Shown in pieces: positions 1 to 59,891 of a stretch of DNA of 64,000 nt. The notes under the pieces were generated by a model. That model worked only from the letters and a program-made list of their open reading frames with translations, had not been told where the DNA came from and searched no databases. Numbering within the stretch: position 1 is the first letter of the stretch; every line of letters begins with the position of its first letter. This DNA comes from Paramoeba atlantica (Eukaryota > Protista > Discosea), in the NCBI GenBank assembly GCA_977017575.1, contig CDRNVI010000025.1, positions 1 to 64,000 of the forward strand, read 5' to 3'. Made by a program: the position numbers and the translations under genes.

Positions 1-1984
1 TGGGGGGGGGTCTAAAATTCGTAAAATTTGTCCAATTTTGGAAAATAATAGCGCGTTCGAGAGCTCTCGCAGAGTTGTATGTTTTAAGATAGGCAGTTTG
101 CGGGGGTTAGGGGGGTACCCCCCTTTGATGGAAGGGTCAAAAACACGATTTGCAAATTTTAAAAACTGTAAAAAATGGTCAAAAATTACCCTTAATACCC
201 ACAGGAAGACCCGTTTCGCTCAATAACGATGCGACAACGCTTGCGGAAACTGCTCATCGTGTTAATTTTCTTTTTTAGGCTCTTCGTTAAACGCGGTGGT
301 TGCTTTCAACTTAGAAGTCACTCATGCTGCGCGCTTCGCGTTGAAAACTACCACCGCGTTTAACGAAGACCCTAAAAAAGAAAATTTAGCCTGGAAAACG
401 GAAAGAATATAGCCGAAAATAGCCGAATTTCGGGTAAAAATGGGGTGATTTTCGCGTATTTTTGCTGTCAGAGCACTAAATCCGACATTTGCGCGTGGGA
501 AATCACTCGCAGGCATGAATGAAAGCCTACCGAACGTATTGGGTAGAGAATACGACTCCAACCATACCATTCTTTCGACACAAAAATGCCCCTTTAGGTC
601 CGAAAAATACTTTTTCACCTTTTTTAGTCAAAATTGGGCCATTTTGAGGGGCGCACCACGGTTCGAAGAAGTGATACCTTGCGAAAACAACTGCGGAGAA
701 AGCTAGTGTAGGTCCCAAACTATCAAAATACAATAGGGGAAACGATTTTGGAAAACTATTTTTTTTGTCATTTTTTTCGCCAAGTTGAATTTTTTTTCAA
801 AATTTTTTTTCCGAAAAAATCCGAACTTGGCGGACCCGTCCTGCGGATACGCGGGGGGGTCACCCCCGGGTGGGGGGGTGGAAAATGCGCGCCAAGACCC
901 CGGCTACCCTTTCTGCGGTTTTTTTTCGAAAACTAATTTTTTCGAAAAAATTTGCTCGACCATGCCCCCCCCCCTGGACCCCCCCCTGGACCCCCCCCAT
1001 GGACCCCCCATTTTTTTCAAATTTTTTTTTCAGTTTTGGTCCACCGGAGCCCCCTTTTATATTTTTTTCTTCTATTATATCACTGTGTTCCCCTTTATAT
1101 TTTCACTGTTTTTGTTCACTTTTTTTCAATAATCGAGTGTAGAGCGGTAGTTTTACAACCACCGCAATACATTCTTACTTGCGTTCTGATTGTAATCTTT
1201 CGAACGCTGTCTCAATGGCCGATACTAATTCAGCCCGATTCTTGGGTCGAAGATCATTTTTGATCCTGTCCATGGTCCCCCAAAGGTTTTCAATGGTTTA
1301 AATCGGGGGATTCTGCAGGCCAAGAGAGTACATTAATACCTTCGTTGCGAAAGGTTGTTCGCGCAGAATTATGAACAGGACAATTATCCATTGCAACGAC
1401 CCCAGATGGGTGGCGCCTCAAATAATTTAAAAGTCCTTTGCGCTTCTTCATGGCATCATTGAAAACATCCCCTGTTACAGTTACTTTTCGGCCGGAAGGG
1501 TCGTGGGAGGGAAAAATGTGTAGATGAAATCCATGATTTTAACTGACCCCCATCCACACCATGACGCCGTTCCCTCCATATCAAGGTTCTAGCTCTCCCT
1601 GCTGTTCCTTGGCGGGGTCAGTCTTCCGGCAAAGGTAAGTAATTTTGTTTCGTCCCCTACCGCAAGTGAACTTCTTCTCATCGCAGAAAACAATTTGTCT
1701 CAGTTGGGTATCTGACCAAGTGAGCATCTCAGAACAAAAATGCACTCGTTTCCTCTTGTGTTCATTGGTCAGTGCGGGCTTTCTTTTTAAAGTTCGCATG
1801 ATCATACCATGGCTCTTCATGGCGTTAACCAAAGTTGGTCTTGAACACTGAAATCCAAGAGAAAGCACAACTCTATGGAGCACACCAGTTCTCAATCCCG
1901 TACGGGAGGTCACGGTATCCCTCATCAATTATAAATCATTTTTACGAATTTTAGACCCCCCCCACCACGAGTTTTTCACCCCTG
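1..1984 (-). mobile_element. Tc1/mariner-type DNA transposon, copy 1 (defective; left end just outside window)
   Basis: TIR CAGGGGTGAAAA..GGGGGGGTCTAAAATTCGTAAAA ends at 1984, followed by TA (1985-86); position 1 starts inside the other TIR. Minus strand encodes FCDEKKF, GGNGVMVW, MDNCPVH and WPAESPDLN-like motifs with in-frame stops. N-terminus is deleted; near-identical to 42489-43860; interrupted by the 267-1165 insertion. Confidence 0.9.
267..1165. mobile_element. Non-autonomous 'hairpin-terminus' element, family B copy 1
   Basis: Interrupts Tc1 copy 1 exactly: the intact copy reads GTGTT-AAT-ACATTC, and AAT is present on both sides (264-266, 1166-1168). 47-bp inverted arms (264-310/340-386) surround a 29-nt loop; small hairpin GCGGTAGTTTTACAACCACCGC at the other end. 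Confidence 0.8.
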
Positions 1985-6390: not shown

Positions 6391-6413
6391 ATCATTATTA
6401 TTATATCCTTATT

Positions 6414-7368
6414 GCGGTGGTTGTAAAACTACCGCTCTACCCTCGATTATCGAAAAAAAAGTGAACAAAAACAGTGAAAATATAAAGGGGAACACAGTAA
6501 TATTATAGAAGAAAAAAATATAAAAGGGGGCCCCGGTGGTCCAAAATAGAAAAAAAAATTGAAAAAAATGGGGGGTCTAGGAGGGGGGGCATACGTCGTT
6601 TTTTGAAATTTTCAAAATCTTGATTTTCGAAATCAAGCGCAGGGAAGTGGTAGAGTAGGCCGCGGCGATAATCCCCCCCCCCTGGTACGCGCAGGAGGGG
6701 TCCAGCAAGGTCAAAATTTCCGAAATTTTTGGGGTCATCAAAAAAAAAATTTGACCCCAAAAAAATATTGTTTTTCCAAAATCGACTCCCAAAACGTATT
6801 TTAAGAGTTTGGGATCTCAGCTACCATTTTACGACGTTTTTTTCGACAGATTCGCCTCCTACCCCTACTGGTAAGGTTTCAAAAGCAGCCGAAATTCGGG
6901 TTAAAATATCGAATTTTTAGCCTGAAAATCATGCTTTTTTGTCGAAAATTATGTAGTTTTCTTGAATTTTTCTTTTTTTAGTCTGTTGGGGTGATAAATG
7001 TAAATGGGGTAAATCAATAAAAGGGGGCGTTGAATAAAATTGTGGTGATCAATAGAAAGGGGTGATCAATGAAATGAGGGACTGAAATCCCGGTTGGTCG
7101 ACTAGGGCTATGGTGTCGTAACAGTTACATGGAAACCTCTACTCTTAGTTAAGCGCGGAGGTAGTTTTCAATATAGTATTTGTAAAGTTCGGAACCTCAG
7201 CTACCTTTTTGCGACTTCGATTCCTACAATACGATTTCAGTAATCATGTTAATACGTATTTTCTTTTTTAGGCTTTTCGTTAAACGCGGTGGTTGTTTTC
7301 AACTTAGAAGTCACTCATGCTGCGCGCTTCGCGTTGAAAACTACTACCGCGTTTAACGAAGAGCCTAA
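6414..7368. mobile_element. Family B copy 2 (opposite orientation to copy 1; terminal palindrome flipped)
   Basis: 6414-6840 is the reverse complement of the copy-1 end (ATT-GCGGTGGTTGTAAAACTACCGC...). Full palindrome at 7268-7368; extra partial arm at about 7146-7172. Confidence 0.7.
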
Positions 7369-7369
7369 T

Positions 7370-7867
7370 AATTTCAGGCTGTAAAACATCTCTTGATCAG
7401 GGGCGTTATACCCTCAGACACGACACCGCGCTAACTGAACTCGCCAAACACATCCAAGAATCCCCGCATACAAAATATCAGCATTTTGACCTACTAGGTC
7501 ACCGAAATCCACCACATTGGCTACACAACAATCCGAATCATCAACGTCCAGACGGATTCGTTGCACTGACTGACGGTACAGAATACATCGTTGAGCTCAC
7601 TGTCCCCTGGTAAGAGAACTCAAGTACAACGCTCTATTACACGAACGACGAATAGTGCACCCGAACACGTACCTCCTCGTATTCGAAATTGGAGCACGAG
7701 GTGGTCTGATATCCTCAGCGGATATTAATCGGTTGTTTGGAGGGGGCAAGGATTTGGGGGCTAAATGTCGGGCGACGCTCTCCCGAGCTGTTATCCGTTC
7801 CAGCTTCATATTATGGCACAAGCGTGATTCCCCGCAATGGAGCGATGCAGGGACACTGTCCGCATAA
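7370..7867 (+). pseudogene. 5'-truncated REL-type non-LTR retrotransposon remnant (HERO/NeSL-like)
   Basis: My translation gives ISGCKTSLDQGRYTLRHD...QRPDGFVALTDGTEYIVELTVPW*EN, then (frameshifted) FEIGARG...SFILWHKRDSPQW. Confidence 0.75.
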
Positions 7868-8009
7868 GGGATGCAACTAACAGCGTCATATGCGCAAGTT
7901 AGTTACATCCTAAAAATCCTCTATCTTAAAAGGTATGATATCATCATATCGTACCTTAGATTGTACCTTGTTGCCTTTTTCTTTATACCTTGTTGATCTA
8001 CCCCATGTA

Positions 8010-48574: not shown

Positions 48575-50395
48575 GTCTTGCCCGAAATGGCAAAAAAAAT
48601 ATTTTTCCAAAATCGTTTCCCCTATTGTATTTTGATAGTTTGGGGCCTGTACTAGCTTTCTACGACGTTGTCTTCGCAGCACACCCTTTCTCGGAGCCGT
48701 GGTATGCCCTCGAAAATGACCCATTTTTGACTAAACGAGGGTGAAAAAGTATTTTTCGGACCCCAAGGGGCCTTTTTGTGTCGAAAGAATTGTATGGTTG
48801 GAGTCGCATTCTCTATCCAATACGTTCGGTAGGACTTCATTCATGCCTACGAGTGATTTCCCACGCGCACATGTCGGATTTAATGCTCTGAGAGCAAACA
48901 TTTAAGCAAAAAAATGATCCCTTTTTTACCCGAAAATCGGCTATTTTTGGGTATAATATTTCCGTTTTCTTTAGTTTTCCAGGCCAAATTTTCTTTTTTA
49001 GGCTCTTCGTTAAACGCGGTGGTAGTTTTCAACGCGAAGCGCGCAGCATGAGTGACTTCTGGTGGGCACGAAAATGTGGGGGGGGGTCAAAATTTCAATA
49101 GCTTGGCCAATTTTGGAAAGTAATACCGCATTCGAGAGCTCTCGCAGAGTTACGTGACATGTGATAAAGCGTTTCCCGCGTTTTTAATTTTTTTAAAAAT
49201 TTAAAAAAAAATTATTTTTCAAAGTGCAAAATTCTGCACTTAGGCCACTTTTTCGTTTTTTCTTCTTTCTGCCCTCCTTTTTGTTCTATGGCCCAGAAAA
49301 GAGCATTTTCAAACAACAAGAACGTACAGAAACGTGACAGGGGCTGTTACAGTCCTTGTGGACAAATAAAGGCCTCGCATAGGATCCTTCTTGTGAAGAA
49401 ATACGAGGAAACTGGTTCTTTTTCCGCCGCCGCACGCGAAGCAGGTTGTCACGAGAACACTGCGAAGCGTTGGATCCAGCGATACGAGGAGACAGGGGAC
49501 GTGGATAGGTCTCCTTACAAGGAGCGTCAATCAATCGTCATGACTCCAGAGCTAATAACCCGGGCTATAACCCTCATTGATGAAGGTACAGGAGATTTGC
49601 CTTGCGGGATTCCGTCATGGTCGAACCTCGTGTCAACCCTTCAGTCCGAAGGGTTTTATTGTTCCCGGCGCTCTATCACGCGCACTTTAAAGCGTGAAGG
49701 CATCATTTTGCGCACTGTCCCCCGTCGTCCAGCTCTTACGGCTGCCCACAAGCAAAAACGAGTTGAGCTGTGCCGCGAGCTGTCGGAGTGGACCCCTCGT
49801 GATCTCGAGTCCATTATTTGGACTCGATTATTGTTCCCCAATTTTCTGAAGAGACATTCAGGCGCTGTTGTGGTGATGGATAACTGTCCTATCCACAATA
49901 CTGCACGTTGTCATTTTGATGAAAATAGTGTCACAATGCTAGCTTGGCCCCCCATGTCTCCTGATCTCAACCCCATCGAAAATATTTGGGGACAAATTGA
50001 ATCACTCAAAAATACTAAATATCCTAAAAATAGGGGGGAATTGTGTGATGCAATACATTCAGGGATTGAATTGTTGAAAAGAGAACAACATGGCGTGTTT
50101 GTAAGTACTTTACAGAGCATGCCTAGACGAAAATGGGGGTCATTGTGGATATTAGTCAGTTTTTTTACTTTTTTTTGCAGCTGCAGTTGTCATTTTTACC
50201 CCCTTTGGCATATGGACCCACCCCCCTGGATGCGGGAAACGCATTATCACATGACACGCAACTCTGCGAGAGCTCTCGAATGCGGTGCTATTTTCCAAAA
50301 TTGGCCAAGTTACACAAATTTTGACCCCCCCCCCCACATTTTCGAGCCCACCCCTGTATGTTGAAAACGACCACCGCGTTTAACGAAGAGCCTAA
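48575..50395. mobile_element. Family B copy 3, palindrome loop interrupted by Tc1 copy 3
   Basis: 48590-49060 is the reverse complement of 311-770; the second arm resumes at 50360-50395 after the Tc1. Confidence 0.8.
49061..50356 (+). mobile_element. Tc1-like transposon copy 3 (divergent subfamily; first catalytic Asp deleted in frame)
   Basis: Related TIRs, TA at 50357-58, left end clipped; ORF 49288 onward with HTH, IIW joined directly to ..VVMDNCPIH..WPPMSPDLNPIENIW. Confidence 0.88.
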
Positions 50396-58832: not shown

Positions 58833-59103
58833 GGCCAATCAGTAGCAAAAAATCAACTTGCTATTCGACAAAGGGCTATTCACTATTGGACAGTGGTTTA
58901 CTAAGTGCTCAAATAGAAGTAAACTTTACTTACATTTGATTGAAGGTACTTATTCAGAGCACTTATGAAAAATCATCTTTGGAATACTACCGAATTTTTG
59001 TACGTTCTTTTGTTATTAAATGAATGTTTAGTAGTACCTAGTAAAGTATATGAAGTCTCTTTATATCGTGTATTAGCGATAACGACTCTGACCCATTCGC
59101 TTA

Positions 59104-59678
59104 TGTGCACCCCCACTTATAGTGCCGCGGTTTTCGACCAAACGGCACTATAAGTGGGGGGGGTAGTATGTTTCAGATCGAGGGTGAAAATTTTTCCACT
59201 TTCAAAAAAAAAAGAAAGTATCTGTCACCTTTTCGCGAAAAGTAGTGACAGATAAGTAGGGGGGGTACAGTACCTTCGTCACTGCATGCTTACCATTAAT
59301 TTCTTGGAGGAATTTAAGGTGCACCTTCCATAAAATTGCCTTTGAAAAGCAATTTTCGCTCTTTGTTAAACCTTCTCTGGCGCTTTCTTCCTTTGAGAAC
59401 GCGATTGATGCGTGATTGATAAATCGACTCCTAAAACGTATTTTAGTGGCTTCGTTAAACGCGGAGGTAGTTTTCAACGCTAAGCGCGCAGCATGAGTGA
59501 CTTCTAAGTTGAAAACAACCACCACGTTTAACGAAGTCACTCAATATTAGAAATTTCCACCATGTTTACTGTACTTTTTGGTCAAAAAAAATAGTTATTT
59601 TTTTTCGGACAATTTTTTTTTCAAAACGGCACTATAAGTAGGGGGGTACCCCGCGGCACTATAAGTGGGGGGGCACAG
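59104..59678. mobile_element. MITE family C3 containing family B palindrome copy 4 (59445-59541)
   Basis: GTGC(A/C)CCCCCACTTATAGTGCCGCGG inverted ends; CGGCACTATAAGTGGGGG internal repeats. Confidence 0.8.
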
Positions 59679-59891
59679 TAATAAATCAAGCAACAGATAG
59701 AAACACTCTATTATGAGGTAAAAAAAGCTTCACTTTCGAAGAGAGGAAACTCAACTCAAACCATGTTTAAAAAGATTGCGTGCTGAGAGGTAGCACTGCT
59801 CAGTGCGGAACTGAAAAAAGTCAAGAGGAATTCGTAAAAGACGTTAAGAGGATAGTTGGCCCCATATTCTGTTGTCTATTCCACACTTGGT

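Follow-up and report, generated by a model that had tools for sequence, protein, structure and literature searches.

Paramoeba atlantica carries, at positions 264-386 of contig CDRNVI010000025.1, a long palindrome that is very probably the 3' terminal hairpin of Helitron2-type rolling-circle transposons, with an orientation fixed relative to the body of the element. It is the first of four copies in the initial 64,000 nucleotides of this contig, the whole stretch of DNA that we analyzed and refer to as the window. A sequence-only reading of the window had proposed that the palindrome alternates between flip and flop isomers, as expected of rolling-hairpin replication. Parvovirus-like end replication in a cellular transposon would have been remarkable; the idea fails a direct census of palindrome orientation. 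Our assignment to the Helitron2 type is based on end structures, protein domains and the absence of target-site duplications.

The presence of the same palindrome at four window sites, with arms of 34-47 nt around a 29-nt loop, was readily verified. The loop motif is found at 311-339 (+), 7304-7332 (+), 49034-49062 (-) and 59479-59507 (-), that is, twice per strand where shuffled sequences give an expectation of zero, and the arm motif has eight matches. The 264-386 copy has arms of 47 nt; at 7258-7368, 48987-49059 plus 50360-50395, and 59445-59541, one arm or both are 34-36 nt long. Folded as single-stranded DNA, the 123-nt unit at 264-386 reaches -51.3 kcal/mol (z -14.6) on one strand and -45.8 kcal/mol (z -11.6) on the other; the other two intact window palindromes form DNA hairpins of -29 to -36 kcal/mol (z = -7 to -9). 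The sense-strand (minus) loop of 311-339 starts with GCGAAGC, which we take to be a very stable DNA mini-hairpin motif. In an alignment of 41 distinct palindromes, paired bases make up 92% of cells, compensatory changes affect 10 pairs, the loop shows little or no variation at most positions, a 9-pair helix within the loop is kept (97.6% of cells paired), and an A.A mismatch in the stem is retained on the sense strand. From these sequences, the hairpin appears to be a directional structure that is copied faithfully, its asymmetries (the A.A mismatch and the loop) never being reshuffled.

We searched the 45.7-Mb assembly (248 contigs) for related elements. The palindrome at 264-386 has dozens of genome copies at 98-100% identity, and the loop motif occurs in ~825 copies. 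Most informative is family B, a non-coding element of ~0.9-1.0 kb, of which 33 distinct copies were aligned with their flanks: they are 96-98% identical, share the same exact ends, and similarity between flanks stops exactly at both of these ends. The palindrome forms one end, and a short hairpin with a 9-bp stem (GCGGTGGTT/AACTACCGC) lies 2 nt from the opposite end. The sequence-only reading had rightly noticed such a hairpin with a match to the palindrome arm: in the window, GCGGTGGTTG is found in the hairpins at 1144-1167 (-) and 6412-6435 (+). Family C (~0.7 kb, non-coding) and several variants have the same two ends and different bodies. Head-to-tail arrays are present, with a precise tail-to-head junction at locus L006. 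At locus L044 (G000:C3:239016-242034, around 1450-1572), we also observed a palindrome inner arm fused to the second half of the 5' hairpin via a common AAAACTACC motif; this fusion may be a recombination or joined-ends product formed through the terminal inverted repeat.

In Helitron sense, 44 of 45 distinct flanks have A immediately 5' of the element and 28 of 31 have T immediately 3' of it, within AT-rich surroundings whose consensus is about ATTA|TTAT. No direct repeat corresponding to a target-site duplication flanks any of the 30+ copies examined. The only empty site that can be reconstructed is at locus L012, where the element lies inside a 20-bp tandem repeat: excising the element restores the host unit exactly, and there is therefore no target-site duplication. 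Insertion between A and T would be the most parsimonious reading of these flanking sequences.

For the orientation census, we counted exact patterns made of the loop in a given orientation and a 12-nt body anchor. Such counts are unbiased because the arms are symmetric and a flip leaves the geometry unchanged. In family B, the loop in (+) orientation is associated with the anchor at 218 places, and the loop in (-) orientation with the same anchor at 5 places. Four of these five inverted matches are in fact canonical: the full body is on the usual side (scores of 264-283 versus 35-36), and the outer arm is prolonged by 22-30 nt of inverted sequence copied from the body start, which puts the anchor on both sides. 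The fifth, locus L034 (C59:425936), is a true flip, the centre of the palindrome being inverted, arm variants included, relative to a full body. Family C yielded 36 canonical palindromes and no true flip: its three inverted-pattern matches are all double-sided and coincide with usual matches on the opposite strand. Thus, where flip/flop isomerism by rolling hairpin had called for about equal numbers, the census gave 218:1 for family B and 36:0 for family C; one flip in 219 rules out a 1:1 ratio (P ~3e-64). Outside family B, 20 loop sites drawn at random comprised 18 with a body on the canonical side, 2 that could not be scored and none that was flipped, and a local tally of 75 distinct palindromes gave ~60 canonical, 1 flip and 1 symmetric. 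The palindrome has the same polarity relative to the body in ~99% of scorable copies.

A search for a Rep/helicase gene of the HUH type carried by the same ends, as suggested in the sequence-only reading, was successful. The Pfam domain Helitron_like_N (PF14214) has 29 matches in the genome. An element on contig C43 harbors an intact 2975-aa open reading frame (ORF) with DUF6570, Helitron_like_N and PIF1 (PF05970) domains and an HUH motif, and its helicase region matches Pif1 structures and Helraiser 7lcc. A second autonomous copy, on contig C41, is 99.76% identical to the first over 10 kb and has different flanks. The two remain homologous exactly as far as the short hairpin on one side and the palindrome's outer edge on the other, which delimits an element of 12.86 kb. 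Read in the direction of the ORF, the element has the short hairpin at its 5' end (A|TTGCGG...) and the palindrome at its 3' end (...CCTAAAA|T); the converse assignment, with the palindrome as 5' end, was ruled out by the direction of the autonomous ORF together with the Helitron2 5'-hairpin rule. The complement of the 5' GCGGTGGTTG (CAACCACCGC) is located 27 nt from the 3' end, where it belongs to the hairpin's outer arm instead of preceding the hairpin. Based on these common ends, families B (~0.9 kb) and C (~0.7 kb) can be regarded as non-coding derivatives of the 12.9-kb Rep (HUH)/PIF1-helicase element. A half palindrome (inner arm and loop, outer arm absent) was also seen just upstream of the start of the Rep/helicase (RepHel) ORF, at L066:4706-4790 and L067:9764-9850 (G000:C43); it is preceded by two partial family-B-like bodies.

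We infer from this anatomy a rolling-circle mechanism in which the transposase would nick the 5' end (host A | TTGCGG...) beside the short hairpin and then unwind one strand. In this displaced strand, the long palindrome, which has the conserved A.A mismatch and the structured 29-nt loop, would fold and mark the cut at ...AAAA | T, and the single strand would be joined to host DNA at an AT-rich A|T site, with no duplication of the target. As one defined strand would be copied faithfully, the orientation of the loop and the asymmetry of the arms would be inherited unchanged. The earlier proposal of a non-autonomous family moving through a single-stranded, hairpin intermediate can thus be retained in part: the sub-terminal repeat, the hairpin ends and the Rep/helicase partner are all present, and since an intact Rep/helicase element has the same ends, movement via a single-stranded rolling-circle intermediate is expected. 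Rolling-hairpin transfer is the part that has to be abandoned.

Several points weigh against a Helitron2-type 3' hairpin of fixed polarity, or at least against its details. Exact B or C anchors scored 254 palindromes, or ~31% of the ~825, and older copies may behave differently. The terminal bases can be shifted by 1-2 positions, such that the empty site at L012 is compatible with A|T, T|T and T|A alike. Body-like sequence lies on both sides of some symmetric copies (L031, whose arms measure at least 300 nt; L040; and window copy 4), and the polarity that we would assign to them rests on the longer side. Finally, window copy 2 can be read as a flip: sense family-C-like debris lies on its left, and its right arm ends in CCTAA|T like a normal short 3' terminus. 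As regards the largest symmetric copy, L031 (G000:C8:153317-156402; palindrome at L031:561-683 (-)), a family B body of at least 297 nt is found on both sides with a mutual score of 283, and its loop is a variant also present in L020. Judging from this arrangement, L031 would be either a fold-back arm of great length or an inverted dimer of giant size.

Palindromes that look flipped fall into four classes. Some are elements on the other genomic strand: window copies 1 and 3 have the same polarity, and their seeming mutual inversion on the + strand simply reflects their location on opposite strands. Others have an outer arm lengthened by an inverted copy of the adjacent body. A third class comprises orphan palindromes in nests of other repeats, such as window copy 2. 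The last class consists of very rare true inversions, for which ectopic conversion or recombination involving copies of opposite orientation is the best explanation. The L034 flip has, 1 kb away, a neighbor in the opposite orientation with which it has three otherwise rare variants in common, and this suggests ectopic conversion with the neighbor. Since the flip keeps the arm asymmetry in swapped positions, L034 is an inversion and not a product of fold-back resynthesis. The near-identical arms of opposite-strand copies may pair in direct register, in which case conversion across the loop would flip one of the two relative to its body. One may also imagine that the giant 3' palindrome is the orientation-specific terminator of an undescribed Helitron2-like lineage, in which rare flips, namely C59:425936 and perhaps window copy 2, as well as lengthened outer arms and symmetric units, are all footprints of a folded 3' end, left by occasional priming or strand switching in the single-stranded intermediate; we consider this quite improbable.

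Within the window, copy 1 is the palindrome of a full-length family B element of 906 bp (264..1169, minus strand in Helitron sense), which is 96-97% identical to the reference copy L014 over its entire length and is bounded by a host A ahead of 5' TTGCGG and a host T past 3' GAAAA. The 3' terminal palindrome (264..386, -), with 47-nt arms and a 29-nt loop, folds as described above and is of canonical polarity, the body extending from 387 on; the 5' terminal short hairpin (1144..1167, -; -8 kcal/mol, z -6.3) has a 9-bp stem, and its GCGGTGGTTG sub-terminal inverted repeat lies 2 nt from the end. Copies 3 and 4 are also canonical. Copy 3 (48585..49059, +) consists of a 5'-truncated family-B-like body (48585-48986), the inner arm (48987-49033) and most of the loop, and is 87% identical to B positions 50-510. 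As recognized from the sequence alone, it is split by a Tc1/mariner-type transposon, which occupies 49060..50359 (+) in the loop and has inverted ends and a 358-aa ORF with a partial DDE_3 domain and an HTH_Tnp_Tc3_2 domain. This insert, of ~1.3 kb, is internally deleted and was integrated at a TA of the loop. The outer arm of copy 3 follows at 50360..50395 (+): it is 36 nt long and ends in CCTAA|T, a short-class 3' terminus that recurs in other copies, among them the autonomous element with its CCTAAAA|T.

Copy 4 (59271..59683, +) aligns to family C and is a family-C-type derivative, in which a remnant of the body (59271-59444) precedes the palindrome (59445-59541) and a repeated tail of 140 nt (59544-59683) follows. 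The last 24 nt before the palindrome (59421-59444) are 100% identical to a stretch of the family C body (L036) located 183 nt upstream of the palindrome, and the left flank recurs genome-wide upstream of palindromes at varying distances. The left flank thus looks like a sense family C body joined to the palindrome via a 183-nt internal deletion. On the other side, the right flank aligns in reverse (59542-59600) to the part of the C body that adjoins the inner arm, at 66-68% identity over alignments that also span the palindrome, and we read it as an old fold-back extension of the outer arm, which would make the polarity of copy 4 canonical. That copy 4 represents a flipped family, with its right flank conserved at 40 or more loci, was considered and rejected, the left flank corresponding to a sense C body and the right flank to an inverted body copy. 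Short high-copy repeats flank copy 4 at 59544-59683 and 59100-59214, with at least 40 copies each; the former ends in ...GGGGCACAG|TA and the latter contains an internal inverted repeat.

Copy 2 (7258..7368, -) is an orphan palindrome, 95-96% identical to the consensus. Its 47-nt left arm is of full length and stops at the canonical long-class terminus, beside DNA for which BLAST shows a single genomic copy. The right arm is 34 nt long and ends in CCTAA|T, and an unrelated repeat, which we call repeat X, starts 2 nt beyond. Further to the left, an old family-C-type element (6412..6985, +; 84% identity to the family C copy L036) comprises a 5' hairpin (6412-6435), a body and the start of a decayed inner arm, the latter lying in two pieces (6966-6985 and 7141-7172). 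Between this arm and copy 2, the segment 7175-7233 weakly resembles a family C body in + sense (Smith-Waterman score of 27 versus a null maximum of 18). The palindrome of copy 2 has diverged far less from its consensus than the neighboring C arm remnant (7141-7172) and C-like fragment, which stand at ~75-82%. These differences fit copy 2 being a younger 3' end amid old family-C debris, which may have either polarity relative to a body. Repeat X itself (7371..7900, +) has ~12 genomic copies of 89-90% identity, all beginning at 7371. It contains the C-terminal end of an ORF (...RPDGFVALTDGTEYIVELTVPW) that, by its motif only, looks like the restriction-like endonuclease tail of an R2-type retroelement; Pfam gave no match for this ORF fragment.

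Several window stretches have a 99-100% identical counterpart on contig G000:C69, in the same order: 264-386 matches C69:218895, 6900-7900 matches C69:225533-226533 and 59271-60100 matches C69:275010-275838. C69 is probably a haplotig or reflects a recent large duplication. Exact-pattern scans of metagenome contigs with the unique left flank of copy 2 and with loop plus arm produced no matches.

Three other explanations deserve to be weighed together. Rolling-hairpin replication, or hairpin transfer, would invert the terminal palindrome at each round and generate both flip and flop isomers. The idea arose from copies 2 and 3, which on the + strand have opposite loops (+ and -, respectively) and yet both show a T-run on the left and CCTAATA on the right. 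These common flanks are illusory: the T-run belongs to the palindrome, being mirrored as an A-run in full-length copies, and TAATA is just 5 nt long. Nor do the two copies make a pair of isomers, copy 3 being canonical and copy 2 having no resolvable body. There remain the true flip at C59:425936 and those outer arms that are extended by self-complementary copying, a process that needs a folded hairpin with a free 3' end; against these stand the 218:1 and 36:0 ratios, the absence of flips among 18 scorable random copies, the stem mismatch and loop unchanged across 41 distinct copies, the swapped arm asymmetry of L034, which denotes inversion and not resynthesis, and an autonomous element with a Helitron-type Rep/PIF1 protein and unlike ends. 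We give rolling-hairpin replication almost no chance. Alternatively, the palindrome could be a stand-alone foldback element, akin to a miniature inverted-repeat transposable element (MITE), that inserts alone in either orientation, its association with a body being secondary. The excess of ~825 loops over the 254 with exact B or C anchors would be consistent with this, as would copy 2 and L053, which have no recognizable body, and L040, a short symmetric unit. However, 18 of 20 random non-B palindromes have a recognizable body on the same side and terminate a longer element, palindromes are not flanked by target-site duplications, and the homology of the two autonomous copies stops exactly at the outer edge of the palindrome. 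Besides, solo 3' ends are an expected Helitron2 by-product, 5' truncation having been described (PMC3627910). A predominantly stand-alone, TA-flanked MITE, the outcome that the sequence-only reading had named as fatal to its own proposal, is therefore not what we found, and a stand-alone element appears very unlikely. TA- or TTA-flanked MITEs of the Stowaway or Tourist type were rejected as well: flanks are not duplicated, and the host repeat at L012 is restored without a target-site duplication.

The last alternative concerns copy 2 only, which could be a genuine local inversion of the 3' palindrome of the family-C-type element starting at 6412, produced not by transposition but by conversion or recombination among oppositely oriented nested copies. 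A family C 5' hairpin and body do precede it in + sense (6412-6985), followed by the C-body-like segment at 7175-7233 in the same sense; the right arm ends in CCTAA|T as in short-class 3' termini; and the proven flip, L034, likewise lies 1 kb from an inverted neighbor with three common rare variants. But the ages do not match (95-96% for the palindrome versus ~75-82% for its C-type neighbors), the element at 6412 has an inner arm of its own that is separate from copy 2, and the left arm of copy 2 ends at a canonical long-class terminus beside single-copy DNA. We find such an inversion rather unlikely, and return to the Helitron2-type 3' hairpin of fixed polarity as the reading to be compared with known systems.

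Like parvoviruses, including adeno-associated virus, the element has a terminal palindrome that is long, imperfect and asymmetric at its centre, and its autonomous form encodes a HUH-type Rep. However, polarity is fixed here (218:1) where a ratio of ~1:1 is the rule in these viruses, the two ends are unlike each other, the element is integrated and multi-copy, and the helicase is of the PIF1 type (superfamily 1) and not of superfamily 3. The bacterial IS200/IS605 and IS91 insertion sequences resemble it in their HUH chemistry, sub-terminal recognition hairpins at both ends, lack of target-site duplication and strand-specific copying, but they rely on a small Y1 or Y2 transposase without a fused helicase and their hairpins are of ~20 nt. 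Foldback elements and MITEs are mobile units with terminal inverted repeats flanked by a target-site duplication, whereas in 18 of 20 sampled copies the palindrome terminates an asymmetric element longer than itself. Among eukaryotic rolling-circle transposons, canonical Helitrons (Helitron1) have 5'-TC ... CTRR-3' ends and a single 3' sub-terminal hairpin, in contrast to the 5'-TTGCGG / ...GAAAA-3' ends and two hairpins observed here. Helentrons and their non-autonomous HINE and DINE-1 relatives (Thomas et al. 2014, PMC4067079) come closer: they combine sub-terminal inverted repeats, lying 2-4 nt from the 5' end, with a palindrome close to the 3' end; their non-coding derivatives are abundant and their boundaries rich in T. 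Yet Helentrons are defined by the fusion of a Rep/helicase with an apurinic-like endonuclease, and a Pfam scan of the entire 2975-aa ORF found no endonuclease domain; the element is therefore not a Helentron in the strict sense. HINE 3' palindromes measure 5-10 bp (PMC4067079) versus arms of 34-47 bp here. Helentrons insert at TT; here, A|T is the most parsimonious site, with T|T also fitting L012 and boundaries being ambiguous by 1-2 bases.

As judged from its sequence, the features tested place the element with Helitron2-type rolling-circle transposons. Helitron2 elements (Bao & Jurka 2013, PMC3627910) have hairpins at both ends, with 0-2 nt between the 5' hairpin and a 5'-T terminus, as well as a short inverted repeat common to the 5' end and to a site ~20-30 nt before the 3' end and upstream of the 3' hairpin. 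Non-canonical fungal FoHeli elements also belong to this group (PMC5148889), while kinetoplastids were reported to lack Helitron transposases (PMC8788227). The P. atlantica element conforms in having hairpins at both ends, the 5' one 2 nt from a 5'-T (TT followed by the 9-bp GCGGTGGTT/AACTACCGC stem), and a short inverted repeat that its 5' end has in common with a site lying 27 nt before the 3' end. It conforms equally in its lack of target-site duplication, its RepHel (HUH and PIF1-like) autonomous partner, its short non-autonomous derivatives and its tandem arrays. It departs from published Helitron2 elements in three respects. The 3' inverted repeat forms part of the outer arm instead of preceding the hairpin; insertion occurs at (T)TA|TT, compared with TTTT|T/C or TNAT|A; and the 3' hairpin has arms of 34-47 bp (hundreds of bp in some copies) and a conserved, structured 29-nt loop, whereas in the published elements the 3' asymmetric terminal inverted repeat and hairpin lie within 20-30 bp of the end and are far smaller (PMC3627910). 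What remains of moderate interest is a Helitron2-type system that is very young, present in many copies and accompanied by an intact autonomous partner, and a 3' hairpin several times longer than in published descriptions (PMC3627910, PMC4067079). Its fixed polarity, conserved mismatch and structured loop make it a good substrate for understanding how Helitron transposases recognize the 3' end.

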